Assembly: GCF_947568905.1 (NCBI RefSeq)
Contig: NC_079167.1
Location: 33,294,001-33,358,000 of the forward strand
Direction of reading: 5' to 3'
Length of the DNA stretch: 64,000 nt
Source of the DNA: Ostrea edulis
Taxonomy: Eukaryota
Under the pieces are notes generated by a model that saw nothing but the letters and a program-made list of their open reading frames with translations, was not told the DNA's origin and made no database searches. The translations under genes and the position numbers were made by a program. Shown here one piece after another: positions 23,101 to 52,967 of the stretch (the stretch's first letter is position 1; the number at the start of each line of letters is the position of its first letter).

Positions 23101-26100
23101 CTTAAGATGTACATGGGTTGCTGCTATCTGTTTGTGTTGTACAGGGCAATGGATTTTAACTTGGAGATACACTCTGCGTAAATACTGTATCAAATCTTGT
23201 ACATCCCTCTGTCAATGATCCAAGTGTATGGTAAAGTTTGATAAAGTATATGTATTTCTCTTGGTACCTCATCCTCTGGGGATACAGGTTAGAACAAGTC
23301 CTCAGTACCCCTTGCTTGTCGTAAGAGGCGACTAGATGGGGCAGTCCTTCGGATGAGACCGCAAAAATTAAGATCCCATGTCACAGCAGGTGTGGCATGA
23401 TAAAAATTCCTCCCTGCTCAAAGGCCGTAAGTGCTGAGCATAGGCCCAAATTTTTCAGCCCTTTACCAGCAATGGTCACCATATGTGTGAAAAATTCTCG
23501 ACCAGGACGTTACACAATATAAAACCATTCAACTTTGTTACCTCTACCAATTCATTTTTGATTAGTTTTATCATTGGTCATGATAACCTTGTTTTAGGAT
23601 CACATGTTGTGTAGTACAGGTATGAATTTCACTAGAAAGTCATTTGTAAGCATCAAAATGAGATTGATACTTAATAAAATGTGAGAGAGCAATTGTTACC
23701 CCTTTGGAGTTTTATGTAATTGCAAGTAGTCTTATATGCTATAACACATTGTTATTGTGTATATTCATTAAGTGAGTAACGAGTATCTTCTGCAGATAAA
23801 AATTTTGCAATTCGATCCTTAATAGGAAACAAATTATTTTCTGCATTTCCAATTTTTCTGGTTGCATTATACCTATATATATACCTATATGTGTCTATAT
23901 ATATACATGTGTAGAAACACGACTGAAGAAGACCGGTAACACGGTCGAAATATTTCGACTAAGTGTTTAGAGTTTTTATATATATATATAAATATAAATA
24001 ATATATACTGTATTGCGATTTTAATTTTCGGTATTGCGATTTTAATTTTCTGTAAAAACGGACTGTACTGTTTTACTATTTGTACATTTTTACTATTTGT
24101 ATTGTTTTTCACAGTGAGCAGGTTCTACACTTATGGCTGGAGACACTATGTTCCTGTATGGACATTGTAGAGAAATGGTATCACCCCTGGTCGTTCATGC
24201 GCAGTCCCGGATGGGTACAGATCAAATGTGAACTGAGGTAAGTACAATTTTAAGTACAGTTATAGTTACAATCATATACAGCTATAATGTAAAGGTGTTG
24301 TCGGTACTCGTTGTTTAACATAGATTTTAATGCATGCTATTTGAAATTTAGTGCACCCTTGCTGTTGTGGGAACACCTTTGTATAAAATATATTTTGATT
24401 TGCATCTACCTTCTTCATAGACATATATCCTTTGTGAAAGTTTTGTGTGTAATAATAATACTGTATAGCAGGAAATTAAATCGCAGAGTTAATTTTCGAT
24501 ATATTTGCTGAAACAAAATTTCCGCGAATTTAACATTCAGTGAATTAATCTTTCCTATTGAAGGATATTAAGATTTGTTTTTCCGCGAATTAAACCAACC
24601 ACGATTTGTTGCTAAATGAAAAAATCACGATTTTTTCTGACCGCGATATTAACCTGCTATACAGTATGCTGAGAAAAAGAAAAATCACTGTTGTTAACCA
24701 GAGTTCTAAAGCATATGATATAGCTGAAATGCAGCATCTAAAGCCTACACTAAGCAGATAGATAAATCATATGCAGCTTCGATATTCAATAAATAGAATG
24801 ATATGATTACAGTAACATTGATATTTACTTCCAAATCAAGGGAAAAACTCGTAAGGAAGCAAATCTAGCCATCCTTTACTGTATTCAAGAACATAGACCT
24901 TTAAGAAATAAATTTCATTTTTGAACTGCAACACTTCACTCTGGCATGCGACACATTAATGCTTCATGAAAAGCATGCCAGCGTTAAGTTTTGGAGTTCA
25001 TGTGTACTTCATGTATTTTCAGAAATGAAATAAATTTCTTATTTTTACATTTCTACTTTGAAATTCATTTCTGTTGGAATTTCCGGCCGTTTGAATAGAC
25101 ATACAATATTCATTAAGATTCATACGCTCATTGTTCACAACTGCAGGGCATTCATGAGGAAATGTTTATCATTACAATTTGTAATGATATCAAAGGCAGA
25201 AACATTGGAAATGTAAATATTTAAGAATGAACAGATTATGAATACTGTAAAGAGTTAGGAAACAGTGAAACATCAGAGGGTGTCTCGTGTAACCCTCACT
25301 TCTGACTTCGTGGCTGCCTGCTGATGATGAGTTGATATATTGTGGTTTATTACAGGCTTTTGGCTCAGTTTGCCTTTAATCTGTCCATGGATTGGGAATT
25401 ACAAGTCAGCAAAAAGAAATCTCCGACTTTCTCAATCACAAAATCTGTCCAAGACATTCTCATCAAGCACCACCTCTTCAGTTGGGAAATATGATTCAAA
25501 ATGAAATTATTTTACACATGATTGAATGTGCAATAGAATTTCCACACCAGTCAAGTACACATGTACATTTACATTGTACAAATATTTTTTTAGAATTTGT
25601 ATTGATGCTCACCAAGAAACCTTTGAAGATCATGAGATGAAAATTGTCTTGTATTTTTTGTTTCCCATGTTAAGGAATTGGGAGTTTTGCCTGACTTAAT
25701 ATATAGGCACTTCTATGAAAATCAGTCACACAATTTATCTGTATTTTACAAATTGCAGCAAATCCCAAACATTCCAGCAATATTGAGTATGCTTATGATT
25801 GAACATGAGCAGCTGAAAATATCATACCATAGTTACGCAATCAGTCAAAATACATCTCATACATGTGCTTTGGGGGTTTCCTATAGGAATTTTCTGTTGA
25901 GCTTTGTCATGCAGTAGATGTTTTTGTTCTAGTTACCTGCATGTTCTGTGGTGGTGGATTTCATATCAATATTAAAATGGAAGTCTTTCTATTGAAACAT
26001 TTTGTTAAAAGCTGTAGTAGCACTTATTCTGATGAGAAATAATTTTTGAAAAATGAAGAGCTAATTTTAGATTTGTAAAGCAATTCCTGATGCTTTGTTA

Positions 26101-29100
26101 ATTTCAACAGAGTCTTGTCTCAGTTGGCTTTCAACTTGTCTCCGGAATGGGAAATACCTAAACGAGGAACTCCACAAAAAGCACAGGTCAAAAATGGCGT
26201 ACGAGATATGCTTATTAAGCATCACCTGTTTAGTTGGGAGATATGAGTAAAACACATGTCAGATGTAGATAATGGTGAAGGCCCACTCTGATATGATATG
26301 ATATCAAGACAACACTTCATATATGTATGTCATTAGAGTGTTAAGTTAGATGTATAGATTCTCTTAACAGCAAAATACAAAACAGGGGTACAACTTCCTT
26401 GTTGGATAGCTCAGAAAGTTTACAACCTGGGAAATGTTTGCAATGTTGTCAGTGGTACATACAGGGCATATATTGCCCTTGCCATAGGCATCGTCTCGAG
26501 TTTTATCATTGGATTCCCATTGTCCGTTAAAGGTTTTACTGGTAACCCCATAACTTAAATTGCATCAGTATTTGTAATTCGTACCAGTATCAACTGTATT
26601 AGGGGTGTTTGTCATCGGCAGTCACTGGCTACCTGTAGTAACAACCGTGCATTTTCAGAAAGGAAATCCAATTAATGTGATGGCAGTTCCTCTTAACATG
26701 AAAAATGTTGTCATACTACAACTAGAAAATGATTTTTCATTATCCTTAAATTACAGGTAGATAATTAAATATTTTAAATTTTCCAATCCTTTTTGAATTA
26801 AAAAAAACAATTCTCTCCTAAAAGTGTTATCTATGGATGTCTAAATTTTAACGCAGATAAAGTTCCAGACGGTTGAATAGGTCACACATGTGGAAGACTA
26901 CGGTCAGTCACCTTTATACTGAGAATAATTACTGAGTAGTAAAAGCCCATATTGATGATTGTACAAGGCTGCAATTGGCATGTAAGATAGGGGACCCATA
27001 GAAACACCAGGTCAATGACATTAGTGCTAAAGATATACCAGTGGTTCGTTAAATCACTGATTGGTACCATCAGCAGCTGCCTAATTCAAATTAGATGATA
27101 GATCTACCCACACACTCCTTACACTGACCTTGTGTAGTGAAATGAGGGAACGGATCAAAAGATCTAACTTTAATCGGCAAAATAGTTGAACAAGTATCAC
27201 TGTTGGTTTAAGTCAAGGTCACAAAGTTACTATTCGCTAGTAGTAAACAAGCCAAGCTCTTTCCAATAACATACATGTACATGTATAAATTTTCCTGCAG
27301 CAAGATTTGATGATATAGTGTGTGTGTTGATCTATAAATGAATTCTCCTCTCCTAATGACAAAGGTCATGTGTCAGGTTAGTGTAAGAATTAATTAAAGT
27401 ATGAAAATATGGGGGTGGGGGTGGGGTGGGGGGACACATAGATATCAAAATTTTTATTGGGGAATATTGTGGTGTGCTAAAGTAATAAATTATTTATTCA
27501 AAACATGACTGCATGCATGCTAAGCAGCTGTGTTTACCTTTGGTGTGCAATGGTGTGATCAGTGCATTTGTATAATCACACGTGGATATAGGTATCAGAT
27601 TATCTAAAAGTGACTCCACAGATATTTTGATAAAATTCAGAATAGATCTTGACAGTTTCTTTATGGTTAATTCCCGTCTCATTTTGATGCTTATAAAATA
27701 CTTCAGTGCTACTGTGTAAATTAGGATGTATATACTATTTGTTGATGTTGAAGACAGCCTAATTTTTTCAGTGTATGAAAATAAATAAAATGATGACCGA
27801 GGCTAGGATTTCATAAAAAATATAAAAGTATCGAATTCTGATCTTGTAGGTGTCATATTAAAGATCTTTTTAAGGACTATTATTCAGGATTCACCCCCAT
27901 CAAAAGGTCTCTCTGAATCTAATGTTTCCCATCACCAGGGTCATCTTCGGTGAAATTTTAGCCAAATTCACCCATCATTATTATCTAGTACTCGGGCCAC
28001 AAAATACCTGAATAAAAAAAGGTAGCCCCAGGTAATAACTAAACTTGCATATACATGTATAGACATTAAAGAGTGGCATGCAAATTTGAATGAAGGCAAG
28101 CTCAGGTGTACAAGACCAATGTCACACCTGTGTGATTTTCAGACTTCAAATCAAACTGAAAGTGAAACTTGATAGATGAAATTTTTGTAACCTCACTGAG
28201 CTATCAAATTCTCATTGGATACCCAGACTGCTATGTGTAATATCAGGATCATTCCTTCACTAGTTCTCAGTCTCTCAATATGTGTACTAACATTTCATGC
28301 TGCCTGTAGATGGAACATTTTATAATACAACAAATCTTTTTTTGTTTATTGATGTTAGGCACTTTGGGTTATTTCATATTAAAGTAATTTGATAATATCC
28401 AGTTTTTGTTACCTTTACTGCAAAGAATTGAAATCCATCTGTATAAATGTTCAATATAGTATTGTGATACTCTTTTGTTTTTGTTAGTTTTCTCAGGATG
28501 TTGTAATGAAATCCATTCTTTTTATGTTGTAACACCTATTTGTTGTGTTCTGAATTGAACTTATTATTTGAAATTTTATTTATATGAATAAAAAAGGCTC
28601 CCTATGTTTTATACTCTATTATACACACTGTTGACAACTGTTAATAAATACATTGCAATAATACATTTACTTTTTGTTTTAACTCTGTTTATTTGTACTC
28701 TTAATTTAAAGTATGAATACTGTAAACCAGCTTCTATTCACAGCTACTTTATTTCGCGATTCACCTGTGGTAAACTGGTTTGCGACAAGTGTTTTTCACG
28801 ATCGAGCCTTTTTCATTACAGATGACAGACATTCATGTACTGGACGGCAATGAGAAATATTCATGACAATTAGGTTCTCGCTAATGTCGCGAAATTTTCT
28901 CACACGCAAATAAAAGTTGGTTTTCAGTATACAACATGATATAGGTTAGTCCGAAATATACGTTTTCCAGACTTTTTTATGATTTTGATATTTACTGTGC
29001 CAGGAAAACGTCAGATCCGGCGCCATTACGTAAACTGGAAATTTGCCACCTCCAGCTGGAGGCGGCATTCTCGGGCCGATTTTAAATACTTGCGAGCCGA

Positions 29101-29783
29101 ATTTAATGTTAAACTCATAATTTTTCAATAAAACGATGCTTCCTGTTCTTACTAATATCTATTAAAAGAGTGATATCTTCTCCAAAATTCGATAACAGAA
29201 GCACGCAATTTGTAGTCAACCGAATTTGAGCGAACGAGTCACGTGACTCAAAACAGCTCGACAGTTTGTTAAAATGTTTTCTTGAGGCTGTTTATGTGCT
29301 TAAAGTACCCATAAAATCGATATTAGCAAGTACAGGAAGCATCGTTTTATTGATTAATTATGAGTTTAACATTAAATTCGGCTCGCAAGTATTTAAAATC
29401 GGCCCCAGAATGCCGCATCCAGCTGGAGGCGGTGAATTTCCAGTTTACGTAATGGCGCCGGTTCTGACGTTTTCCTGGCACGGTAAATATCAAAATCATA
29501 AAAAAGCCAGGAAAACGTCAGATATTTTGGACTAGATATAGGTATTTATAAAGAAAGTGAATTTGCAGTACAAATATTTATACTTTATGGCACTTGGAGG
29601 CGTGTATGTATAAATATAATTTTCTTCACCTGATCTGTTCATTTCAGACTTTTATCCCAGTTTTCATTCAAGCTTTCAAGGGATTGGGAAATCCCACATC
29701 AGACAAAAACTTCCTACCAGCCATTGAAGGAAGGCGTGAAAGATATGTTGGTTAAACATCATCTGTTTAGCTGGGACCTGTAA
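11107..29783 (+). CDS. SGSM3: Small G protein signaling modulator 3 (RUN and TBC1 domain-containing protein 3): TBC-SH3-RUN, 19 shared coding exons plus 3 alternative last exons, 802-803 aa
   Basis: Exons: 11107-11173, 11435-11610, 13114-13180, 13791-13921, 15352-15546, 15935-16069, 16424-16540, 16823-16901, 17269-17414, 18484-18579, 18708-18839, 19506-19694, 20157-20312, 20853-21016, 21591-21684, 21808-21878, 22297-22345, 22576-22661, 24115-24237, then 25356-25494 or 26111-26246 or 29648-29783. All phases are compatible; 2273 nt shared plus 136 or 139 nt. Hallmarks: [90 protein letters not shown]. Confidence 0.96.
11435..11610 (+). CDS. SGSM3: SGSM3 exon 2
   Basis: tttcag|TT GAG...; [21 protein letters not shown]; donor CCA|GTAGGT. 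Confidence 0.9.
11927..12413. mobile_element. Foldback MITE built from gagaactcgtaccca sub-repeats (SGSM3 intron 2)
   Basis: About 95 bp at the left end is the reverse complement of the right end; a related partial copy lies at 59690-60100. Confidence 0.75.
13114..13180 (+). CDS. SGSM3: SGSM3 exon 3
   Basis: [22 protein letters not shown]; tag| acceptor, G|GTGTGT donor. Confidence 0.9.
13250..13421. repeat. 43-bp tandem repeat x4 (intron 3)
   Basis: Unit agccatggaatactgcctgtatacttattttagcaggattcat. Confidence 0.92.
13791..13921 (+). CDS. SGSM3: SGSM3 exon 4
   Basis: [44 protein letters not shown]. Confidence 0.95.
14176..14326. other. Imperfect ~150-bp inverted repeat (hairpin) in intron 4
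   Basis: Left arm tcaatttcacattttggggatg...gatgtcaaggtttcgtga pairs with right arm tcacaaaacctttgacattg...catcccccaaatgtgaaattga; arms ~60 bp, loop ~30 nt. Confidence 0.75.
15352..15546 (+). CDS. SGSM3: SGSM3 exon 5 (TBC domain start)
   Basis: [33 protein letters not shown]...KQIEK. Confidence 0.96.
15935..16069 (+). CDS. SGSM3: SGSM3 exon 6 (TBC catalytic motifs)
   Basis: [12 protein letters not shown]...[12 protein letters not shown]; carries the arginine and glutamine fingers. Confidence 0.96.
16424..16540 (+). CDS. SGSM3: SGSM3 exon 7 (followed by a GC-AG intron)
   Basis: [39 protein letters not shown]; donor CAG|GCAAGA. Confidence 0.92.
16823..16901 (+). CDS. SGSM3: SGSM3 exon 8
   Basis: [26 protein letters not shown]. 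Confidence 0.94.
17269..17414 (+). CDS. SGSM3: SGSM3 exon 9
   Basis: [49 protein letters not shown]. Confidence 0.96.
18484..18579 (+). CDS. SGSM3: SGSM3 exon 10
   Basis: [32 protein letters not shown]. Confidence 0.93.
18708..18839 (+). CDS. SGSM3: SGSM3 exon 11
   Basis: [30 protein letters not shown]...NLPKQ. Confidence 0.93.
19160..19499 (+). mobile_element. Helentron-associated non-autonomous element (HINE-like) abutting the exon 12 acceptor
   Basis: Starts and ends in T-runs. Left sub-terminal hairpin gttccctactgg..ccggaggggac, then tctg/tcca microsatellite-like stretch; right sub-TIR ccggtaggggac followed by a short terminal segment ending gcttgttttt. Confidence 0.65.
19506..19694 (+). 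CDS. SGSM3: SGSM3 exon 12
   Basis: [12 protein letters not shown]...[35 protein letters not shown]. Confidence 0.95.
20157..20312 (+). CDS. SGSM3: SGSM3 exon 13 (SH3 N-half)
   Basis: [11 protein letters not shown]...[26 protein letters not shown]. Confidence 0.96.
20853..21016 (+). CDS. SGSM3: SGSM3 exon 14 (SH3 C-half)
   Basis: [34 protein letters not shown]...TITDLVRG(T). Confidence 0.96.
20996..21378 (+). repeat. 51/63-bp minisatellite made from the exon 14 end and its 5' splice site, 7 copies
   Basis: Unit cacagacctcgtcagggg(g/a)acGTAAGTctgatacagatttaatgtcactgt; GTAAGT at 21017, 21068, 21119, 21182, 21233, 21296, 21347. Confidence 0.95.
21591..21684 (+). CDS. SGSM3: SGSM3 exon 15 (RUN domain start)
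   Basis: [31 protein letters not shown]. Confidence 0.96.
21808..21878 (+). CDS. SGSM3: SGSM3 exon 16
   Basis: [23 protein letters not shown](R). Confidence 0.95.
22061..22088. repeat. Poly-G tract (28 nt) in intron 16
   Basis: Direct reading. Confidence 0.9.
22297..22345 (+). CDS. SGSM3: SGSM3 exon 17
   Basis: [16 protein letters not shown]. Confidence 0.95.
22576..22661 (+). CDS. SGSM3: SGSM3 exon 18
   Basis: [28 protein letters not shown](N). Confidence 0.95.
22696..22949. mobile_element. Fold-back (self-inverted) SINE copy in intron 18
   Basis: Forward 5' half of the SINE family seen at 62112-62375, followed directly by the same segment in reverse orientation. Confidence 0.8.
23272..23530 (+). 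mobile_element. SINE-like repeat (same family as 43596-43860 and 62112-62375)
   Basis: Shared gttagaa..gtcctcagtaccccttgcttgtcgtaagaggcgacta..ttcggatgagaccgc..tgtcacagcaggtgtggca core. Confidence 0.85.
23915..23968 (+). ncRNA. Minimal type I hammerhead-ribozyme-like motif (PLE-terminus type) between TA tracts
   Basis: cga-CTGAAGA-a-gaccg(gtaaca)cggtc-GAAA-ta-TT-tcg: core motifs, 5-bp stem II, palindromic AATATT stem III, stem I cga/tcg extended by aaacac/gtgttt. There is one extra A after CUGANGA. Activity untested. Confidence 0.5.
24115..24237 (+). CDS. SGSM3: SGSM3 exon 19 (last shared exon)
   Basis: [40 protein letters not shown]; phase-2 donor AG|GTAAGT. Confidence 0.96.
24461..24664. 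mobile_element. 204-bp MITE
   Basis: TIR CTGTATAGCAGG...CCTGCTATACAG with TA on both sides. Confidence 0.8.
25356..25494 (+). CDS. SGSM3: SGSM3 alternative terminal exon 20a
   Basis: ttattacag|G; (R)[45 protein letters not shown]; ATTAAA at 25971. Confidence 0.85.
26111..26246 (+). CDS. SGSM3: SGSM3 alternative terminal exon 20b
   Basis: tttcaacag|A; (R)[44 protein letters not shown]; AATAAA at 28587 and 28643. Confidence 0.9.
28718..28929. mobile_element. ~210-bp MITE-like element
   Basis: Imperfect TIRs tactgtaaaccagctt / aagttggttttcagta. Confidence 0.55.
28947..29534. mobile_element. 588-bp foldback DNA transposon derivative with 9-bp TSD (AcademH-like, or MULE-like)
   Basis: Termini TAGTCC...GGACTA; ~210-bp inverted arms (the mirrored ORFs 28946-29128 and 29266-29535 reflect them); perfect TSD GATATAGGT at 28938-28946 and 29535-29543. 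Confidence 0.88.
29648..29783 (+). CDS. SGSM3: SGSM3 alternative terminal exon 20c (closest to the vertebrate C-terminus as I recall it)
   Basis: catttcag|A; (R)[44 protein letters not shown]; AATAAA at 31280. Confidence 0.92.
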
Positions 29784-34039: not shown

Positions 34040-35505
34040 GGCCCCTTGGCCTCTTGTCTCTCTGTCCAGTCCTTTTTCTATCAGCCCTCTCACTCCTTTT
34101 CTATTCACATTTATCTATCTCCCTATCTTTCCCCATCTCCTCTCTCTTTCCCTATTTGTGTTTCCATATCCCATCCCCTATCCTTGTCTCCCTATTCCCA
34201 TCCCCTATCCTTGTCTCGCTACTCCCATCCCCTTTCTTTCACTATCCCTGTCCCCATTTCCCTGTCTCTTTTTCCCCATTCTCCTTTCTCTCTCTATCCA
34301 CTTTTCCCTGTCTCCCCATTTCCTTTTCTATCCTCTTTTCCCTGTCTCCCTATTCTCATCCCCTATCACTGTCTCCCTATTCCCATCCCCTATCCTTGTC
34401 TCCCTATTCCCATCCTCTATCCTTGTCTCCCTATTCTCATCCCCTATCCTTCTCTCCCTATTCTCATCCCCTATCCTTCTCTCCCTATTCTCATCCCCTT
34501 TCCTTGTCTCCTTATTCCCATCCTCTATCCTTGTCTCCCTATTCCCATCCCCTATCCTTGTCTCCCTATTCCCATCCCCTATCCTTGTCTCCCTATTCCC
34601 ATCCCCTATCCTTGTCTCCCTATTCTCATCCCCTACCACTGTCTCCCTATTCCTATCCCCTATACTTATCTCCCTATTCCCATCCCCTATCCTTCTCTCC
34701 CTATTCCCACCCCCTATCCTTGTCTCACTATTCTCAGCCCCATATCCTTGTCTCCCTATTCTCATCCCATATCCTTGTCTCCTTATTCCTATCCCCTTTC
34801 TCTCACTATCCCTGTTCCCATTTCCTTGTCTCTTGTCATTCTCCTCTCCCTCCCTATCCCCCTTTCCTCTCTTTATTCCCACCCCTTTCTCTCCCTTTGG
34901 ATCCCCTTTCTATTCTCATCTCTTTCTTTTTCTCACTGACCCTCCTTTCCCTCTCTTCTTATCCCCTTTCTCTATCTTCTTGTCCCCATTCTTCCTTTTC
35001 TTATCGTCTCTCCCTATCCCCTATCTCTCTTTCCCTATCCCCATTTCTCTCTTTCCCTTTCCCATCTCTTTTTTAAAACCCCTTTTCACCCCCTCCCCAT
35101 TACCCTGTCTCTATTCCCATCTCCTTCTTCTCTCTCCGTATCCCATTTCTTCCTATTCTCATCCCATTACTTCCCCTCTCCTTTCTCCTGTTCTTATCCC
35201 CATTGCCTGTCTCCCTATTCCCAACTCTTTTCTCTTCATTCCAACCCCTCTTCTCTATCCCTGTCTCTATCACCTCGCTAACTGCCCCGTCCCCATTTCC
35301 CTGTTTTTATCCCTTTTCTCTCCTTATCCCCACTTCTCTGTTTCCTTATACCCATCACCTTTCTTTTTCTCTCTTAATCCCCATCTTATGACAATACACA
35401 CACTTTCCCTATCCTCCTTCCACTTTTTCTCTCTATCCCTATCTACCTTTTCCTATTCTCCATCCATTTCCCTCTATCCATATCCTCCTTTTCTTCCCCC
35501 TTCTA
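34040..35505. repeat. ~1.5-kb C/T-rich low-complexity tract with a 27-bp core repeat
   Basis: Unit cctatccttgtctccctattcccatcc; the strand is strongly pyrimidine-biased. The long ORFs here are by-products. Confidence 0.92.
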
Positions 35506-43860: not shown

Positions 43861-46296
43861 ATTATATAGAAGGAAGACTGAATAATTACAACACGTGTCA
43901 TCGGTGGGGATCCGTTGAAATCATTGTGATAAGATCCAGGGGGCGGAGGTTGTCAGGACACCCCCGGAATATTTGTCATGTACTGTCATAGGTGTTTTCT
44001 ATAACGAAGCCAAAACGCATTTTGTTTGGGGGATCTAGATCCGACCTCGTTACATATGCTAATATTTTTAGATTGGATTTTTAAAAACTGCTTTGTTAAA
44101 CAGATTATCCATGCATTGCACTTTTGAATTACAAACATGCATCAAATATCATTAGATATATTTTGTGGCGTGATCACCGCTGTAGGAGACGGGTATGTAC
44201 TAAAAAGTGCACAGCATGGCCATGTGGTTATAGGAGTGCCCAAAATACACTTAGGTGATACATAGTTGTTTGTTTTCATCAAATGTAGACCAAAAATAAG
44301 GCCCCACTGAAACTTCCTGGATCCGTCCCTGATAATAATTGTGCTCCCATAAGACATTCCATTAACGGGGGTGGGAGTGGAGTGAAGGTATCAAGTATCG
44401 GGGTCAAGAGGGGATGGGGTGGTGGGGGTGGAGAGTGGGGTGGCTTGGAGCTCTTGGATCCAGCAAAGTGAAATGCAAGATACGTTTGAAGACGCTTTGA
44501 TGGTTTTGTTCTGTCAGATATAGTGAAAGGAACATATAAAGCTGTTTATACCCGCGGAAAATCCGTAGGAGTAGGAATTTTCTTAAATGAATAAATCTTT
44601 TTTTTTTTTTTTTTTTTTTATCATGCAATGAATATGTTTATGTTATAATCTACATGTGTTATCTAATGATTTCAGTATCGATTAAGATGCTTTGTATTCT
44701 TCTTCTCTGCTGGCCCTAACGCTGTATCGTCAAATCATCAGCGTAGATGTGATATCATTTCCCCCAACTCTATTTATTTTTGGCAGAAAAACAATTAATT
44801 TTGCACCAAAAAAAAAAAAAAATATATATATTTAGTGGCATACTAGTATGCGATATGTCCTTCGATTTCAACGTTGAACCATGTGTGTACTTTCATGGAA
44901 ATTAAATGTATTTTCAACGTTGTCAATGCCATTTTATGAAATTTCTATGTAGGTATATATTCAGTGAAGGAATCTAGCTATATAGGCCGGATTCTATTGC
45001 GATTTCTGTTGTTCATGGTCCCATATAGCTTCACTAGCACATAATTCCACGTGCGTTTTGTGATGCAGTAAACATCCTGTTTTTGTTTTTGAGAGGTGTT
45101 TCGCAATTTTCTTACTACTGAAATTATAATGCAGCTTGGGAAATGTGACCTAGAATTTTAATTTATGTTCTATATATTTAGTTGATATTTTGATAAACGA
45201 ATTCCATTTGATTAGAGCTTGTGATACCGGGTCACGTGTGAGGACGCCATCCCAGATGTAAACATTGTTGATTGAAAATATGGTTATATTTGTACTATAA
45301 TGATGTGATTGCGCAATGATTTGTAAATATCAATATAACGATGAGTATTATTTTTGAATTTGTTGCTGCAAAAATCCTACATGGGAGAAAATAGTGTCGT
45401 TCGTTCACATGGTTTGCGCTCAAAGGGGATGGGAATATGTTGACGACACATGTGTTTAATACACTCGTCTTAATTCATGAAATATTTTTTTCCCCCAAAA
45501 ATAAATTTCTAATTCGTTTGATTCATGAATGTACATATATTTTCATTATAATTGTTTAAAAAAGAAAACTAATCTTGAGTATATTTTACAGAATAAGAAT
45601 GGTTAAATATATTATACAGGTATTAACATTCCCAAAACACGTTCAGATTTCAAAACAAAAAACATGCACGAAGTGGCTCCTGGGCTTGGTATGTTTTAAA
45701 TTGTACACTTAGTTCACAATTATTTAGGTTAGGTCAGACACACTCACTGGTCAATAACAGTTGTGAGATATACTGAGATAAATATATATGTTATCTTCCA
45801 TAACCTAAATTTCCGTAAACAAAACTTTATATATAAATGTTTCAAATACTTTGTCGGAAAATACAGTGTATTCGTAAGATTAAATGAATATTTTTCAGTA
45901 TATGCCATTGAGAAAAAAAAGAAGATTTTTAAAGGATTATATAGTTTATCGCAACTGTTCAGTTTTCCGACGAAATTAACCCTACACACTTGAATAAAAA
46001 CAAACAAACAAACATGGGAATAAAATCCCCAATTTTGATGTAAATAGCGATGGTACGATTCGGAACATTCAATAGGTTATTTGCGTCACTAGGGGTACAA
46101 ATTATGATGCGATACTCGTCCGAGGAGCATGCGACACCGATGGAATGATTCGATTGGTCAATTCTCTTGATTGACAAGGTCACCACTCCCATGGAGTAGG
46201 TAAAGAATGGTATAATAATGGTCCAAAAATGTTTTTTTTAGCAGATGGATATATAACCCTTTCCGTAATTAATAGTAGAAACCTTTTCCGTTGACG

Positions 46297-47913
46297 ATGA
46301 AGAACACTTTGATATCATCGCTCGGGCTTTTGTCCTGTGTCATCATGTTGAAGACGGGTAAGTTTTACATCTTCTTTTTTAGTTCGTTATCCCCTCTTTT
46401 CAAGATAATGGTATCATTATTGAACATTATCATACACACGTTAATACGATATGACTAAATTAACCACTTTGTTAGAGGAAGTAAAACAATTGACCTCAAT
46501 ATCATTCAATATCTTTCGATTCTATGAATCTAATCTAAAGATCTAGCTATCTCTATGGGGAAAAAACCAACCAACCAACCAACCAAAAAAAAAAAAAAAA
46601 AAAAAAAAAAAGGGAATAAATTGATTTAATAAAAAAAATTGGAGAATTCGTGGTTTTTAAAAACATAGAATTGGTTTTGATAAATTACAATATAAACTTT
46701 AATTTATCACCATATTTTTGTTTCTATGCCCATAAACTCAATGCTAAAAATCATTGTGAATTTTCCATAATGATTTCGAATTCCACCAAACTACCTGTAT
46801 TTTAAAGTGACATGAATAGCCGCCTATCCCATTGGACCATTGCAATTTGCTAGAAAATACTTTAAAGTTACAAAAAATAAAAATAAATATCAGCCCATTT
46901 TACGAAAGCAATCGTCCGATGTCAGGAACCAATCGGTCACAACGACATGAAAAGGGGTGTAAACGCGCGAGCTAAACTACCGGATATATAACAGTTACAA
47001 TAATCCCATCAAAGACGCTTAAACTTAGATAACATCTAATCTGTCAACAAGCCACATCAAACGTGAAAATTACATTAGTACAATGAGTTTACCGATGTCA
47101 TTCTTCTACCAGGTTTAACAAGGTGTATACATTTTGTGTAAAATAAAACTGTTTTAAAAAGATAATCGAATTCATCAGTTCCATGCTTAAACATCCCCCT
47201 TTTGCCACTTCTACGATGAGAGAGAGAGAGAGAGGGGGGGGGGGGGGCGGGGGTGCTGAATGTGATGCAGTTCTAGTGCGCGACTTTTTGAAAATATGAT
47301 AGAAATAGGGAAGGGAATATCTTTTGTGTTATCAATACAGGCCTGAGGGTGTTGCATTTATCTTCTTTTTGGAATTTTGAAAAGTGCATTTCTTATTTCA
47401 TTTGTGCAGTCCTTTGCAAGATCTACTCTCGTCAAAATCGGAGAGAAAATTAACCTATATATACCTTACCACAGAATACAAATTAGACCATGCTGTAGAC
47501 TTACAGTATTTTCTCTTCGTTTTTCAGCTGAATCTATTATTCCCCCGTTCATGCAGTACACCCAGCGGGAGGAGGCAGTGGTGCACAGGTTCCGGCCGAC
47601 GGCAGACAGATGTTGTAGGGTGGGACAGAGAGCAGCCAGGAAGATGATGTCGTGTAGCATCCGTAACAGCCAAAGACTTTTCAATAGTGTTCACACAGCC
47701 CGGAGTTCGAATGGTGGCATAATTCTTAGAAATACGGACTCGTTTTTCTCCAAGGTTACTGTGTGCGCCACCAACTTCTCAACATCATTCGAAAAATGCT
47801 GTGTGAACAAAGAAAATTTTTTGAAAGAAATTAGGATTTGTAGGAGGCGATATAGGGAGAGAGACTTCCGTGCTAAATGCATAAAAATTGCGAAATCAAA
47901 GTATGGACAGTGA
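46297..47913 (+). CDS. Secreted cationic 148-aa protein with an anaphylatoxin/fibulin-like cysteine module; exons 46297-46357 and 47528-47913
   Basis: Exon 1: acgATG, MKNTLISSLGLLSCVIMLKT (signal-peptide-like), phase-1 donor G|GTAAGT. Exon 2: strong acceptor ttttctcttcgtttttcag|CT, same phase, 127 open codons to TGA. Cys pattern CCxxG..x12-C..C..FxKCC. Confidence 0.8.
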
Positions 47914-49956
47914 GGATGAGTTCTGATGTGTTTCGCCATGTTTATGGCGTCATTACTACGGCAGCGTTTATTCCATATTGTAACTTATAAATTCATTTAC
48001 ATTCATTTTAAAAAAAAAATCATATGTTGTGTGTATGGCGACGTTATCAAAATGTCATTGTATAAATGTAATTTATTTTTTTGCCTGCTTTGAATATGCT
48101 TCATATTAAATTCATACATCAGTTATTATTCTGGCTTATACCTCGTTTATTATGTATTCTGCGTTAGAAACAGGTTACACAATCACTACCTATGTGATTG
48201 AGAGCTACGTCAATACGTCTTCCCAACCCCTCGAAAACACCAAGGATTTTCCCATTCGAGAATTTTGTACTCGTGTGGAGACATCATCATCTGTGGATGA
48301 AGTACTACAAATTTTGACCTATAATGAGCTTACGGCCAAATCGGTGAGGGTTCTTTATCGTGTCAATGCCTGCCGCGACTCGGAATCGCTGTTTTTAAGG
48401 CCATGTTGGAAAAATTCGTAACCTTCCCTTCTAATGTTGGGCGTCTGGTGAAGGAACAGGCATTACCTATGTCAAACGTCTCCAAGTTTGATTTGACTAG
48501 CCACACCGGAATTGAGAATCGAACCCGGGCCTCCTGGTTGCAACACCCTCCTCCAAGAAACCCTACAAAACAAACAAAAACACCAAAGTGTCCACAACTG
48601 GAGACACCGCGATCCGTAAGACAACGCGTGTTAAAATCAGTCTTTATCGGTTTAGTAGGTAGTGGCGATAGTGTGAATTTATCTTTCTTTGGAGCTAATA
48701 CTATGCTGATCATAATATAATTGATCGGCTATTTTGCGAGAAGACTATCTCAACATTAAGCTACCCCTCCCGCCCGCCCTCCAACAGTTTATGTAAACAG
48801 ATCAGTGAAAAGCTTATTACATTAAGCTTCCCCCTCCCCCGCCTTCCCTTCAACACTTTATGTAAACAAACCAGTAAAAAGCATATTAAAGGATTTTCAG
48901 ATTTAGGGGATTGGGACACAAAGCCATGCACGTGTTGTTTCATCTTTTCTGTCTTTATTAGCGCTCTGTTAGGATACCCATCACGTCATATGTTATATGG
49001 AGAAAATATAAAGACCCCCACCCCCATTCTCTCTTTTCGCAAGGATCAATCTATTATCGATTAACGTAAGAAACCCTTCCGATGGCAAAGTGTATTTTGA
49101 TTAGTTCTAAGTATATCGAGTCATTTAACTTGCTTCATGTGTCAGGGGTGGATCCAGGAATTTTTGAAAGGGGGGTGTTTCTACCATTAATTTTGATTTT
49201 CAAAAAAAAAAGGGGGGGGGGGGGCTCAAAATGCATAATTTTTATACCTTTATCAGCAAAAGTTTCTGAAGAAAATTGTATATAATATATATAATCCCTG
49301 GAACCTCTCTCTGGATCCGCCATTTTGTGTCTCCGTTACGTTCAGAAAATTATCAACGAACAAACAGGCAAACAAACAAGTTGCAATGACAGAAAAAGGA
49401 CTTCTCTATTAACCCTACTTGTATTCACATTACTACTACTCGGAAAATTGATTTAGTTACACATATATATATGGATGACTTCCCTGAACCAATTCATTAT
49501 TTTTAATCTTGATAACAACGAACACAGAGATAAATAAATTGACATGACCATGATATTCTGATACCGTAAATAAATACCTAGGGTTTGGCCTTGTTGTGAG
49601 ATAACTCCATGGTCATTGGATATGAACACCGATGTTGCAAGTATTCGTCACGGTACATGGTTTCACACACTGTAATATCTTAACATTTGAAACGTGTGAT
49701 ATTTAGAAGAAAGAAAATAATGTTTCTGGGAAGGCACTCAATAGATATGTCATTACGTCAGAGCTTTCACCAATGATATTACGTGGAATATCAAATGTCA
49801 ACTTTTTTTCTTCATCTTTCTTGCGATAAATGAATTTTTTTTAGATACCCCGACTAGTTTCTTCAGTTCTTCTGGAGTATATCATTGACATACACTAATA
49901 TATATATATATATATATATATATAAAGCACAGAAAATTTCACTTTATTTGGATACC

Positions 49957-52186: not shown

Positions 52187-52226
52187 TGACGTCAGCGACG
52201 TACATAAATATTGAAATATGACGTCA
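52187..52226. promoter_or_regulatory. Two perfect CRE palindromes (TGACGTCA) bracketing the start codon
   Basis: TGACGTCA at 52187-52194 and 52219-52226; function is inferred only. Confidence 0.3.
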
Positions 52227-52967
52227 TGGCAGAGAAAATCAGCTGAAAGTGTTGTCCATGCAATTTTGTTTTTAGCATTCATTTTTTGCTTTCTTGGGTG
52301 TTGTGAAACTACAAAGGACCTGAATATACACGAACTTCGACTTGTGGCTCAGCATTTGAAGCATGAGGACTGCAGGAAACTTATCGCCGCTCTCCACCAT
52401 AAAGAATTTTATCTGAAAGTAGAGGAAGTGAAAGCAGAAAACACAAATAAGTCGTGTTTATTTCTGCTGTTGAAATGGGACAGAACAGAGGGCCGGGGCA
52501 AAACCTTTTATGACCTTCCTTTACGCCTGAGACAGCTGGGCCATGTTGTCCTCGCCAAGAAACTTTCCAAGATAGTCTACCACGAAAAAGCTCTCAATTT
52601 GAAGAGGACCTTAACGGACGACCCTTTCAAGACCATGGTTGATAAAGACTCGTTCTTACTGGACAATGACAAGGTCCAGCGAGAGGTTCACGTTCAAACG
52701 GACGAGGGCTCCATCGACTTCATTACTTTATTCTGGGCTGTATGTGGAGCCATGTCATTTTTTATTTTGTTGAGAATTTCCTTTCGGATATTTTGCCCTG
52801 GGGCTTTTGCAAGGTTCTGGAAAAAGATGTCACCACAGCCTGTCAGTGATGGCTGCCAGTTCTGCTGTAGTGAGATAGACCGAATTACCGCGAGATTAAA
52901 GAAACTATACAAACGATACGTCGTAGGAATACACGTGGAAAATGATTTATTGGATGAAGAAGTGTGA
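52218..52967 (+). CDS. TMDD1: Transmembrane and death domain protein 1-like: signal peptide, death-domain-like region, TM helix, short tail; single exon, 249 aa
   Basis: Hydrophobic N-terminus HAILFLAFIFCFLGCC; helical DD-like region ELRLVAQHL..DCRKLIAAL..CLFLLLKW..L.LRLRQLGH..LAKKL; DDPFK motif; TM FITLFWAVCGAMSFFILL. The family assignment is from memory of the TMDD1 architecture. Confidence 0.72.
   Translation: MTSWQRKSAESVVHAILFLAFIFCFLGCCETTKDLNIHELRLVAQHLKHEDCRKLIAALHHKEFYLKVEEVKAENTNKSCLFLLLKWDRTEGRGKTFYDLPLRLRQLGHVVLAKKLSKIVYHEKALNLKRTLTDDPFKTMVDKDSFLLDNDKVQREVHVQTDEGSIDFITLFWAVCGAMSFFILLRISFRIFCPGAFARFWKKMSPQPVSDGCQFCCSEIDRITARLKKLYKRYVVGIHVENDLLDEEV

Follow-up and report, generated by a model that had tools for sequence, protein, structure and literature searches.

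Anaphylatoxin (ANATO) modules, which carry six cysteines in the signature CC-x(about 12)-C-x(11-12)-C-x6-CC, are cut from the complement proteins C3, C4 and C5 or are embedded in fibulin-1 and fibulin-2, and we know of no free-standing anaphylatoxin-like mediator in any animal. An earlier note on a stretch of DNA from the oyster Ostrea edulis (assembly GCF_947568905.1, contig NC_079167.1, positions 33,294,001 to 33,358,000 of the forward strand; 64,000 nucleotides, hereafter the window, numbered from its first letter) proposed that a hidden two-exon gene at 46297-47913 encodes just such a protein. Here we report that this gene, LOC125668219, is a real, transcribed and spliced two-exon gene of O. 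edulis, and that its product, as judged by sequence comparison, belongs to an unnamed family of bivalves, gastropods, cephalopods and at least one annelid. The best overall explanation, to which we give a probability of roughly 0.6, is that a selected single-copy gene encodes a secreted, helical and basic protein of this family, which would serve as an extracellular binding ligand and is not demonstrably an ANATO protein.

Three other systems invite comparison. Lymnaea CRNF and Aplysia apCRNF are, like the oyster protein, small mollusc proteins (about 120-150 amino acids) that are secreted, rich in cysteine and without vertebrate homologues, and like the oyster family they act or have been proposed to act as extracellular ligands. 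CRNF and apCRNF have 11 conserved cysteines in common, for which a cystine knot has been argued (PMC3966541). The oyster family, which has eight cysteines with two CC pairs and is predicted to be helical, was set apart from CRNF by this description, and none of its database members bears the CRNF name. Achatina CRASP (158 amino acids) is likewise a secreted, all-alpha, disulfide-stabilised mollusc orphan of similar size; it is acidic and N-glycosylated, with ten cysteines spaced C-9-C-6-C-28-C and C-11-C-8-C-10-C and without CC pairs, and identity with the oyster protein was ruled out on cysteine number, charge and spacing as described (PMC4596865). Finally, NK-lysin, granulysin and the amoebapores share with the oyster protein a compact helical build, several disulfides, strong basicity and secretion, and these saposin-like effectors provide the functional model for the antimicrobial alternative weighed below. 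They have six cysteines without CC pairs, unlike the oyster protein; Pfam gave no saposin match in the 36 family members, and no saposin structure stood among the top rows of the structural matches listed.

The gene model can be read directly from the letters. An ATG at 46297 opens coding exon 1 (46297-46357, + strand), in which 20 codons from Met1 onwards and one base of codon 21 are followed by a GTAAGT donor. The phase-1 intron of 1170 nt (46358-47527, GT..AG) closes with a pyrimidine tract and CAG at the acceptor tttttcag/CT (47527/47528), and from there an open frame runs through coding exon 2 (47528-47910), which completes codon 21 with two bases and encodes residues 22-148, a cysteine-rich cationic domain, to a TGA stop codon at 47911-47913, at the same position as in the Saccostrea orthologue. 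The coding sequence rebuilt by script from both exons translates into 148 amino acids that are letter for letter those of database protein P0001, returned by a word search at 100% identity and carried in RefSeq as 'uncharacterized protein LOC125668219 [Ostrea edulis]'; the gene was therefore not hidden. The proposed structure itself, with a phase-1 donor spliced in frame to a 386-nt exon, was confirmed by a 636-nt contig of run X1, which covers 46263-46356 and 47527-48067 and whose joint leaves out a 1170-nt stretch bounded by GT..AG, exactly the predicted junction of 46357 to 47528. Exon 2 is also covered by contigs of runs X2 and X6, so that three studies contribute (X2 is on record as RNA; X1 and X6 are guessed to be RNA).

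The limits of the transcript were taken from the same contigs. The 5′ untranslated region (UTR) comprises at least 46263-46296, from the start of the spliced X1 contig, and the real start may lie further upstream; a TATA-like box, TATAATAA (46212-46219, + strand), about 45 nt upstream of the first RNA-contig base at 46263, is a putative core promoter. The 3′ UTR (47914-48125) is delimited by contig ends at 48067 (X1), at 48082-48088 followed by adapter (X6) and at 48125 (X2), the last being 15 nt past ATTAAA (48105-48110), a variant of the poly(A) signal. Entry P0002 was rejected as expression evidence: it is a prokaryote-style open reading frame (ORF) call on a genomic Logan contig (L006, 435-878), not a transcript, and its first 22 or so residues are read-through of the 3′ end of the intron with an in-frame TGA. 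Within the intron lies a 271-nt X1 contig of low depth (46375-46556), which departs from the window over its first 20 letters, close behind the donor; it comes either from carried-over DNA or from pre-mRNA of a second haplotype that had not been spliced. Two haplotype contigs were also seen in X20 over 46334-46477. Two simple repeats in the intron, (CCAA)n followed by a 30-nt poly-A (46557-46623) and (GA)n followed by poly-G (47212-47260), break contigs in all runs.

The exon-1 product, with the signal-peptide-like N-terminus MKNTLISSLGLLSCVIMLKT, has Lys2 followed by a 14-residue hydrophobic core, and the protein would be secreted by way of this segment. The mature part has 127 amino acids, a mass of 14.9 kDa and an isoelectric point (pI) of 10.3, with 27 Lys or Arg residues versus 10 Asp or Glu and a net charge of about +17. 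Its eight cysteines are spaced CC-12-C-36-C-10-CC-12-C-12-C. These counts and spacings had been made by hand before and proved exact on recomputation.

The gene is well conserved among oysters. Orthologues have 65-70% identity to the O. edulis protein (65% in Saccostrea), keep all eight cysteines and terminate at the same residue. In Ostrea, Saccostrea and the scallop Pecten maximus alike the coding sequence lies in two exons, and the intron (phase 1) interrupts codon 20 or 21 behind its first base, where leader and mature part meet. Upstream of the Saccostrea cucullata orthologue, at a distance of about 8 kb and in the same orientation, there is an SGSM3-like gene (RabGAP-TBC/SH3/RUN); the last exon of this SGSM3-like gene matches the window at 29634-29780 with 94% amino-acid identity, and the position downstream of SGSM3 is common to two oyster genera. 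The same exon also matches the window at 25345-25491 (45%) and 26109-26243 (51% amino-acid identity). In three oyster pairs, the dN/dS (ratio of nonsynonymous to synonymous substitution rates) of the mature part was 0.07, 0.11 and 0.21 by the Nei-Gojobori method, with dS saturated; the gene is under purifying selection among oysters. A paralogue search of the oyster genome found none, the next best match having E = 0.5; the gene is single-copy in this genome. Since there are only three ORFs of at least 90 amino acids in the next 16 kb, the orthologues keep the frame and dN/dS is low, the reading frame is beyond what chance would give.

As neither Pfam nor the word search accounted for the protein, we ran an exhaustive profile search seeded with four mature oyster sequences. 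Of the 34 proteins that passed E<=1e-3, 13 also passed E<=1e-10, and one, the repeat protein P0028, was discarded as spurious. The 33 relatives (hmmsearch E from 9e-67 to 1e-4; mostly 140-270 amino acids) come from bivalves (Mytilus, Pecten, Argopecten and Potamilus), gastropods (Patella, Lottia, Pomacea, Physella, Bradybaena and Elysia), cephalopods (three Octopus species) and the annelid Owenia fusiformis. All are named 'uncharacterized', 'hypothetical' or 'unnamed'; Pfam gave nothing for the mature oyster protein (E<=10) and nothing consistent in 36 family members (E<=1), and no literature was found on the FEKCC motif or on six locus identifiers of the family. Orphan secreted cysteine-rich families are numerous in lophotrochozoans, and the LOC125668219-like family is more conserved than most of these.

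The family signature runs the length of the protein. After a hydrophobic leader, the mature chain starts with [VA]-[DE]-[SA]-V-I-P-x-[YF], mostly followed by R-A-K. A first block, F-[RK]-P-T-x2-[RK]-C-C-[KR]-[IV]-G-E-[KR]-x-A-[KR]-K-x-[LM]-S-C, is followed by a variable loop of 28-47 residues, and a second, K-[IL]-x-K-C-[SA]-x2-[YF]-x-K-x-F-E-K-C-C-x-Y-[RK]-x2-[FY], by two more cysteines and a polybasic C-terminal helix ending in [KR]-[KR]-Y-x. The cysteine pattern of the family is CC-x12-C-x28..47-C-x9..11-CC-x12-C-x10..12-C, and the motifs CCxxG and FxKCC are invariant. In the alignment, C28, G32, C42, C79, C91 and C104 are invariant, and C29, A36, K75, F87, K89, C90 and C117 are at least 90% conserved; the core has a pI of 9.5-11.3 in every member. 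The oyster protein has the hydrophobic leader, the mature N-terminus, the eight-cysteine pattern and the polybasic C-terminal helix ending in Tyr, its own C-terminus being KYGQ.

Structure prediction benefited from the wider alignment. With four oyster sequences, AlphaFold2 gave a predicted local distance difference test score (pLDDT) of 56.7, which was unusable; with 36 sequences the pLDDT rose to 78.7 and the predicted template modelling score (pTM) was 0.64, residues 21-44 and 70-127 scoring about 86-98 and the core above 90. The predicted fold is all-helical; the core helices span residues 25-37, 66-82, 84-107 and 111-125 in mature numbering, and the C-terminal helices are amphipathic and basic. 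In two sequences from Logan assemblies, P0018 and P0026, Cys2 (CC to CR or CA) and Cys5 (CC to AC) have been lost together and the other six cysteines kept; from this joint loss we infer a Cys2-Cys5 disulfide. Cys7 and Cys8 probably staple the last helical hairpin, and the protein would fold into a compact core of helices held by four disulfides, on which the variable loop would be a tolerated surface insertion. When the AlphaFold2 model was compared with the Protein Data Bank (PDB) by Foldseek, no match was better than E = 4, and a second look at the matches found nothing related. Similarly, an ESM Atlas shape search returned unrelated bacterial entries alone, an ESM Atlas feature search with two members gave no usable match, and sequence searches of the PDB with the 4-sequence and 36-sequence profiles gave chance rows alone (for example mt-SAF20 and a herpesvirus processivity factor). 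No known fold was thus recognised for the predicted structure, which does not prove a new fold.

Two alternatives connect the locus with complement or fibulins. In one, the two exons would be the 5′ part of a larger fibulin- or C3-like gene, or else a chance ORF or pseudogene. A possible donor, AA/GTATGG, near 47900 speaks for a larger gene, but the X1, X2 and X6 contigs all cross this site and the stop codon into the 3′ UTR without a joint. The RefSeq model has the same 148 amino acids and the orthologues end where it ends, and the sole long ORF downstream (52218-52967) has its own ATG and neither a Pfam nor an EGF domain. Since no joint leaves the gene at 47900 and the long ORF downstream encodes no EGF domain, the fibulin alternative is refuted as far as the contigs show; a pseudogene is excluded by a dN/dS of 0.07-0.21. 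We therefore regard this whole alternative as negligible, and the claim that the protein is not cut from C3 or fibulin stands, the gene having two exons of its own and a transcript that ends near 48125. The downstream ORF (+ strand, 249 amino acids, opened by ATG and uninterrupted) encodes hydrophobic stretches at its N-terminus and near residue 175 and matches no Pfam family; from its sequence, it may be a membrane-protein gene without introns.

The other alternative is that the product is a very divergent, free-standing cationic mediator with the anaphylatoxin fold, related by descent or by convergence to the ANATO modules of C3, C4, C5 and the fibulins. It would differ from these in a long loop inserted between Cys3 and Cys4, in one more helical turn after Cys4 and ahead of the second CC, and in a further helix at the C-terminus, held by the fourth disulfide. 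The resemblance that had suggested this lies in CC-x12-C, CCxxG and FxxCC, which do match; the other spacings and the number of cysteines do not, and of the six-cysteine signature CC-x12-C alone fits in the oyster family. ANATO modules have six cysteines and the oyster protein eight, the Cys3-Cys4 loop is of 28-47 residues versus 12, and 9-11 residues (ten in O. edulis) rather than six precede the second CC. Furthermore, the oyster family has an extra C-terminal helix and ends in [KR][KR]Y-x instead of LGLAR, so that the oyster protein lacks the C-terminal Arg effector motif, and it comes, signal peptide included, from a gene of its own instead of being released from, or embedded in, a larger protein. 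Profile comparisons likewise gave no sign of kinship. No match to Pfam ANATO (PF01821) was obtained for the oyster protein or the 36 members at the thresholds given above, and any ANATO score of the mature protein lay below the Pfam gathering cut-off of 21.4 bits. The family profile found no C3a, C4a or C5a chain in the PDB at E<=10; in a control, C3a alone (a query 77/77 identical to PDB 4i6o_A) found C5a and C4a at 1e-8 to 1e-7. By hhalign, the family matched C3a with a probability of 4.6% and a C3a profile with 1.2%, the latter a shallow profile of six C3a fragments, mammalian only, gathered by a word search with C3a; trimming, loop deletion or forced global alignment gave at most 3.6%. Most of these hhalign runs laid the second CC-x12-C-x12-C of the family on the first half of ANATO, a register incompatible with that of the earlier note. 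Because the pattern thus fits ANATO equally well in two different ways, the cysteine resemblance is not diagnostic. A six-frame search of the oyster genome with the ANATO hidden Markov model gave no match at E<=1 and was uninformative, the 36-position model being split by exons. Altogether, ANATO membership was not shown by Pfam, profile or fold comparison, and of the overall interpretation in the earlier note the part that stands is an independent gene that is no fragment of C3 or fibulin, whereas kinship with anaphylatoxins could not be demonstrated; we consider a divergent ANATO fold quite unlikely.

As to function, we tentatively favour, at somewhat less than even odds, an extracellular binding ligand of a hormone-, cytokine- or matrix-binding-like kind over a fast-evolving membrane-killing peptide, because uncharged positions, the N-terminal peptide and the C-terminal end are conserved in a mostly single-copy gene; the conservation of these features spans more than half a billion years. 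In the mechanism we propose, exon 1 would direct the chain into the endoplasmic reticulum and exon 2 would supply the whole mature protein of about 127 amino acids, the mature chain would fold into the helical core clamped by four disulfides, and a specific partner, probably an anionic one, would be bound outside the cell by the conserved N-terminal peptide together with the basic helices. A host-defence effector was another role raised in the earlier note. Such a cationic, disulfide-stabilised helical protein, with antimicrobial or membrane activity and released from haemocytes or epithelia, would account for the net charge of about +17 and the pI of 10.3, for the basic pI throughout the family, for the amphipathic basic C-terminal helices and for the secretory-type N-terminus. 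Bivalve antimicrobial peptides are, however, typically multi-copy, lineage-restricted and fast-evolving. The gene studied here is single-copy in this genome and under strongly purifying selection, and molluscs and an annelid have kept its uncharged motifs, its gene structure and the fixed peptide at its N-terminus; we therefore judge such an effector unlikely, though it ranks next after the ligand. A bolder version of the ligand reading, in which the protein is older than the split of molluscs and annelids and serves Lophotrochozoa, through a receptor of its own, as a free-standing helical cytokine or hormone of anaphylatoxin-like type, is speculative and seems to us improbable.

Several points count against the reading of LOC125668219 as a secreted helical ligand outside the ANATO family. 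A Lys occupies position -3 before the presumed cleavage site in O. edulis, and secretion was judged by the look of the N-terminus. The model has low confidence in the loop at 45-68 and at the N-terminus, and the coupled loss of Cys2 and Cys5 amounts to one evolutionary event in two related sequences. The motif-level matches to ANATO (CCxxG with its invariant Gly, the x12 spacing, FxxCC and the putative Cys2-Cys5 bond, ANATO disulfides being C1-C4, C2-C5 and C3-C6) could reflect a very remote kinship. Finally, the function is inferred throughout, and strong basicity and amphipathic helices fit a host-defence peptide equally well.

At present LOC125668219 is an annotated, uncharacterised gene for which the proposed complement link is not supported. 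The gene model itself was already public; new here are the delineation of an unnamed mollusc and annelid family with a clear signature, a usable structural model, the putative disulfide and the negative ANATO result. In this way a single ORF has led to a defined family, with a signature, a structural model and a disulfide prediction, in commercially important bivalves, model gastropods, octopuses and an annelid. To our knowledge few protein hormones or cytokines have been defined in lophotrochozoans, and proof that the protein is a receptor ligand would give mollusc and annelid biology another conserved signalling axis. Were the ligand as ancient as supposed, it would be either a stand-alone relative of ANATO or a wholly new disulfide-stapled helical fold. 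Should it turn out to be antimicrobial, it would be unusual among host-defence proteins in its age and conservation, and might matter for oyster disease.

Two repeats elsewhere in the window were also recorded. Just downstream of the gene, a high-copy dispersed repeat at 48336-48422 has a summed depth of 11,143 in X20 versus about 34 in its flanks; many contigs break at 48344 and 48379, and ARAGORN found no tRNA in it. Farther upstream, a pyrimidine-rich 27-bp minisatellite at 34339-34821 (array region 34117-35256) comprises 17 copies with 89% match and a higher-order period of 108 bp, and accounts for the extreme GC skew of -0.64 and AT skew of -0.39 in the 34-36 kb bin.
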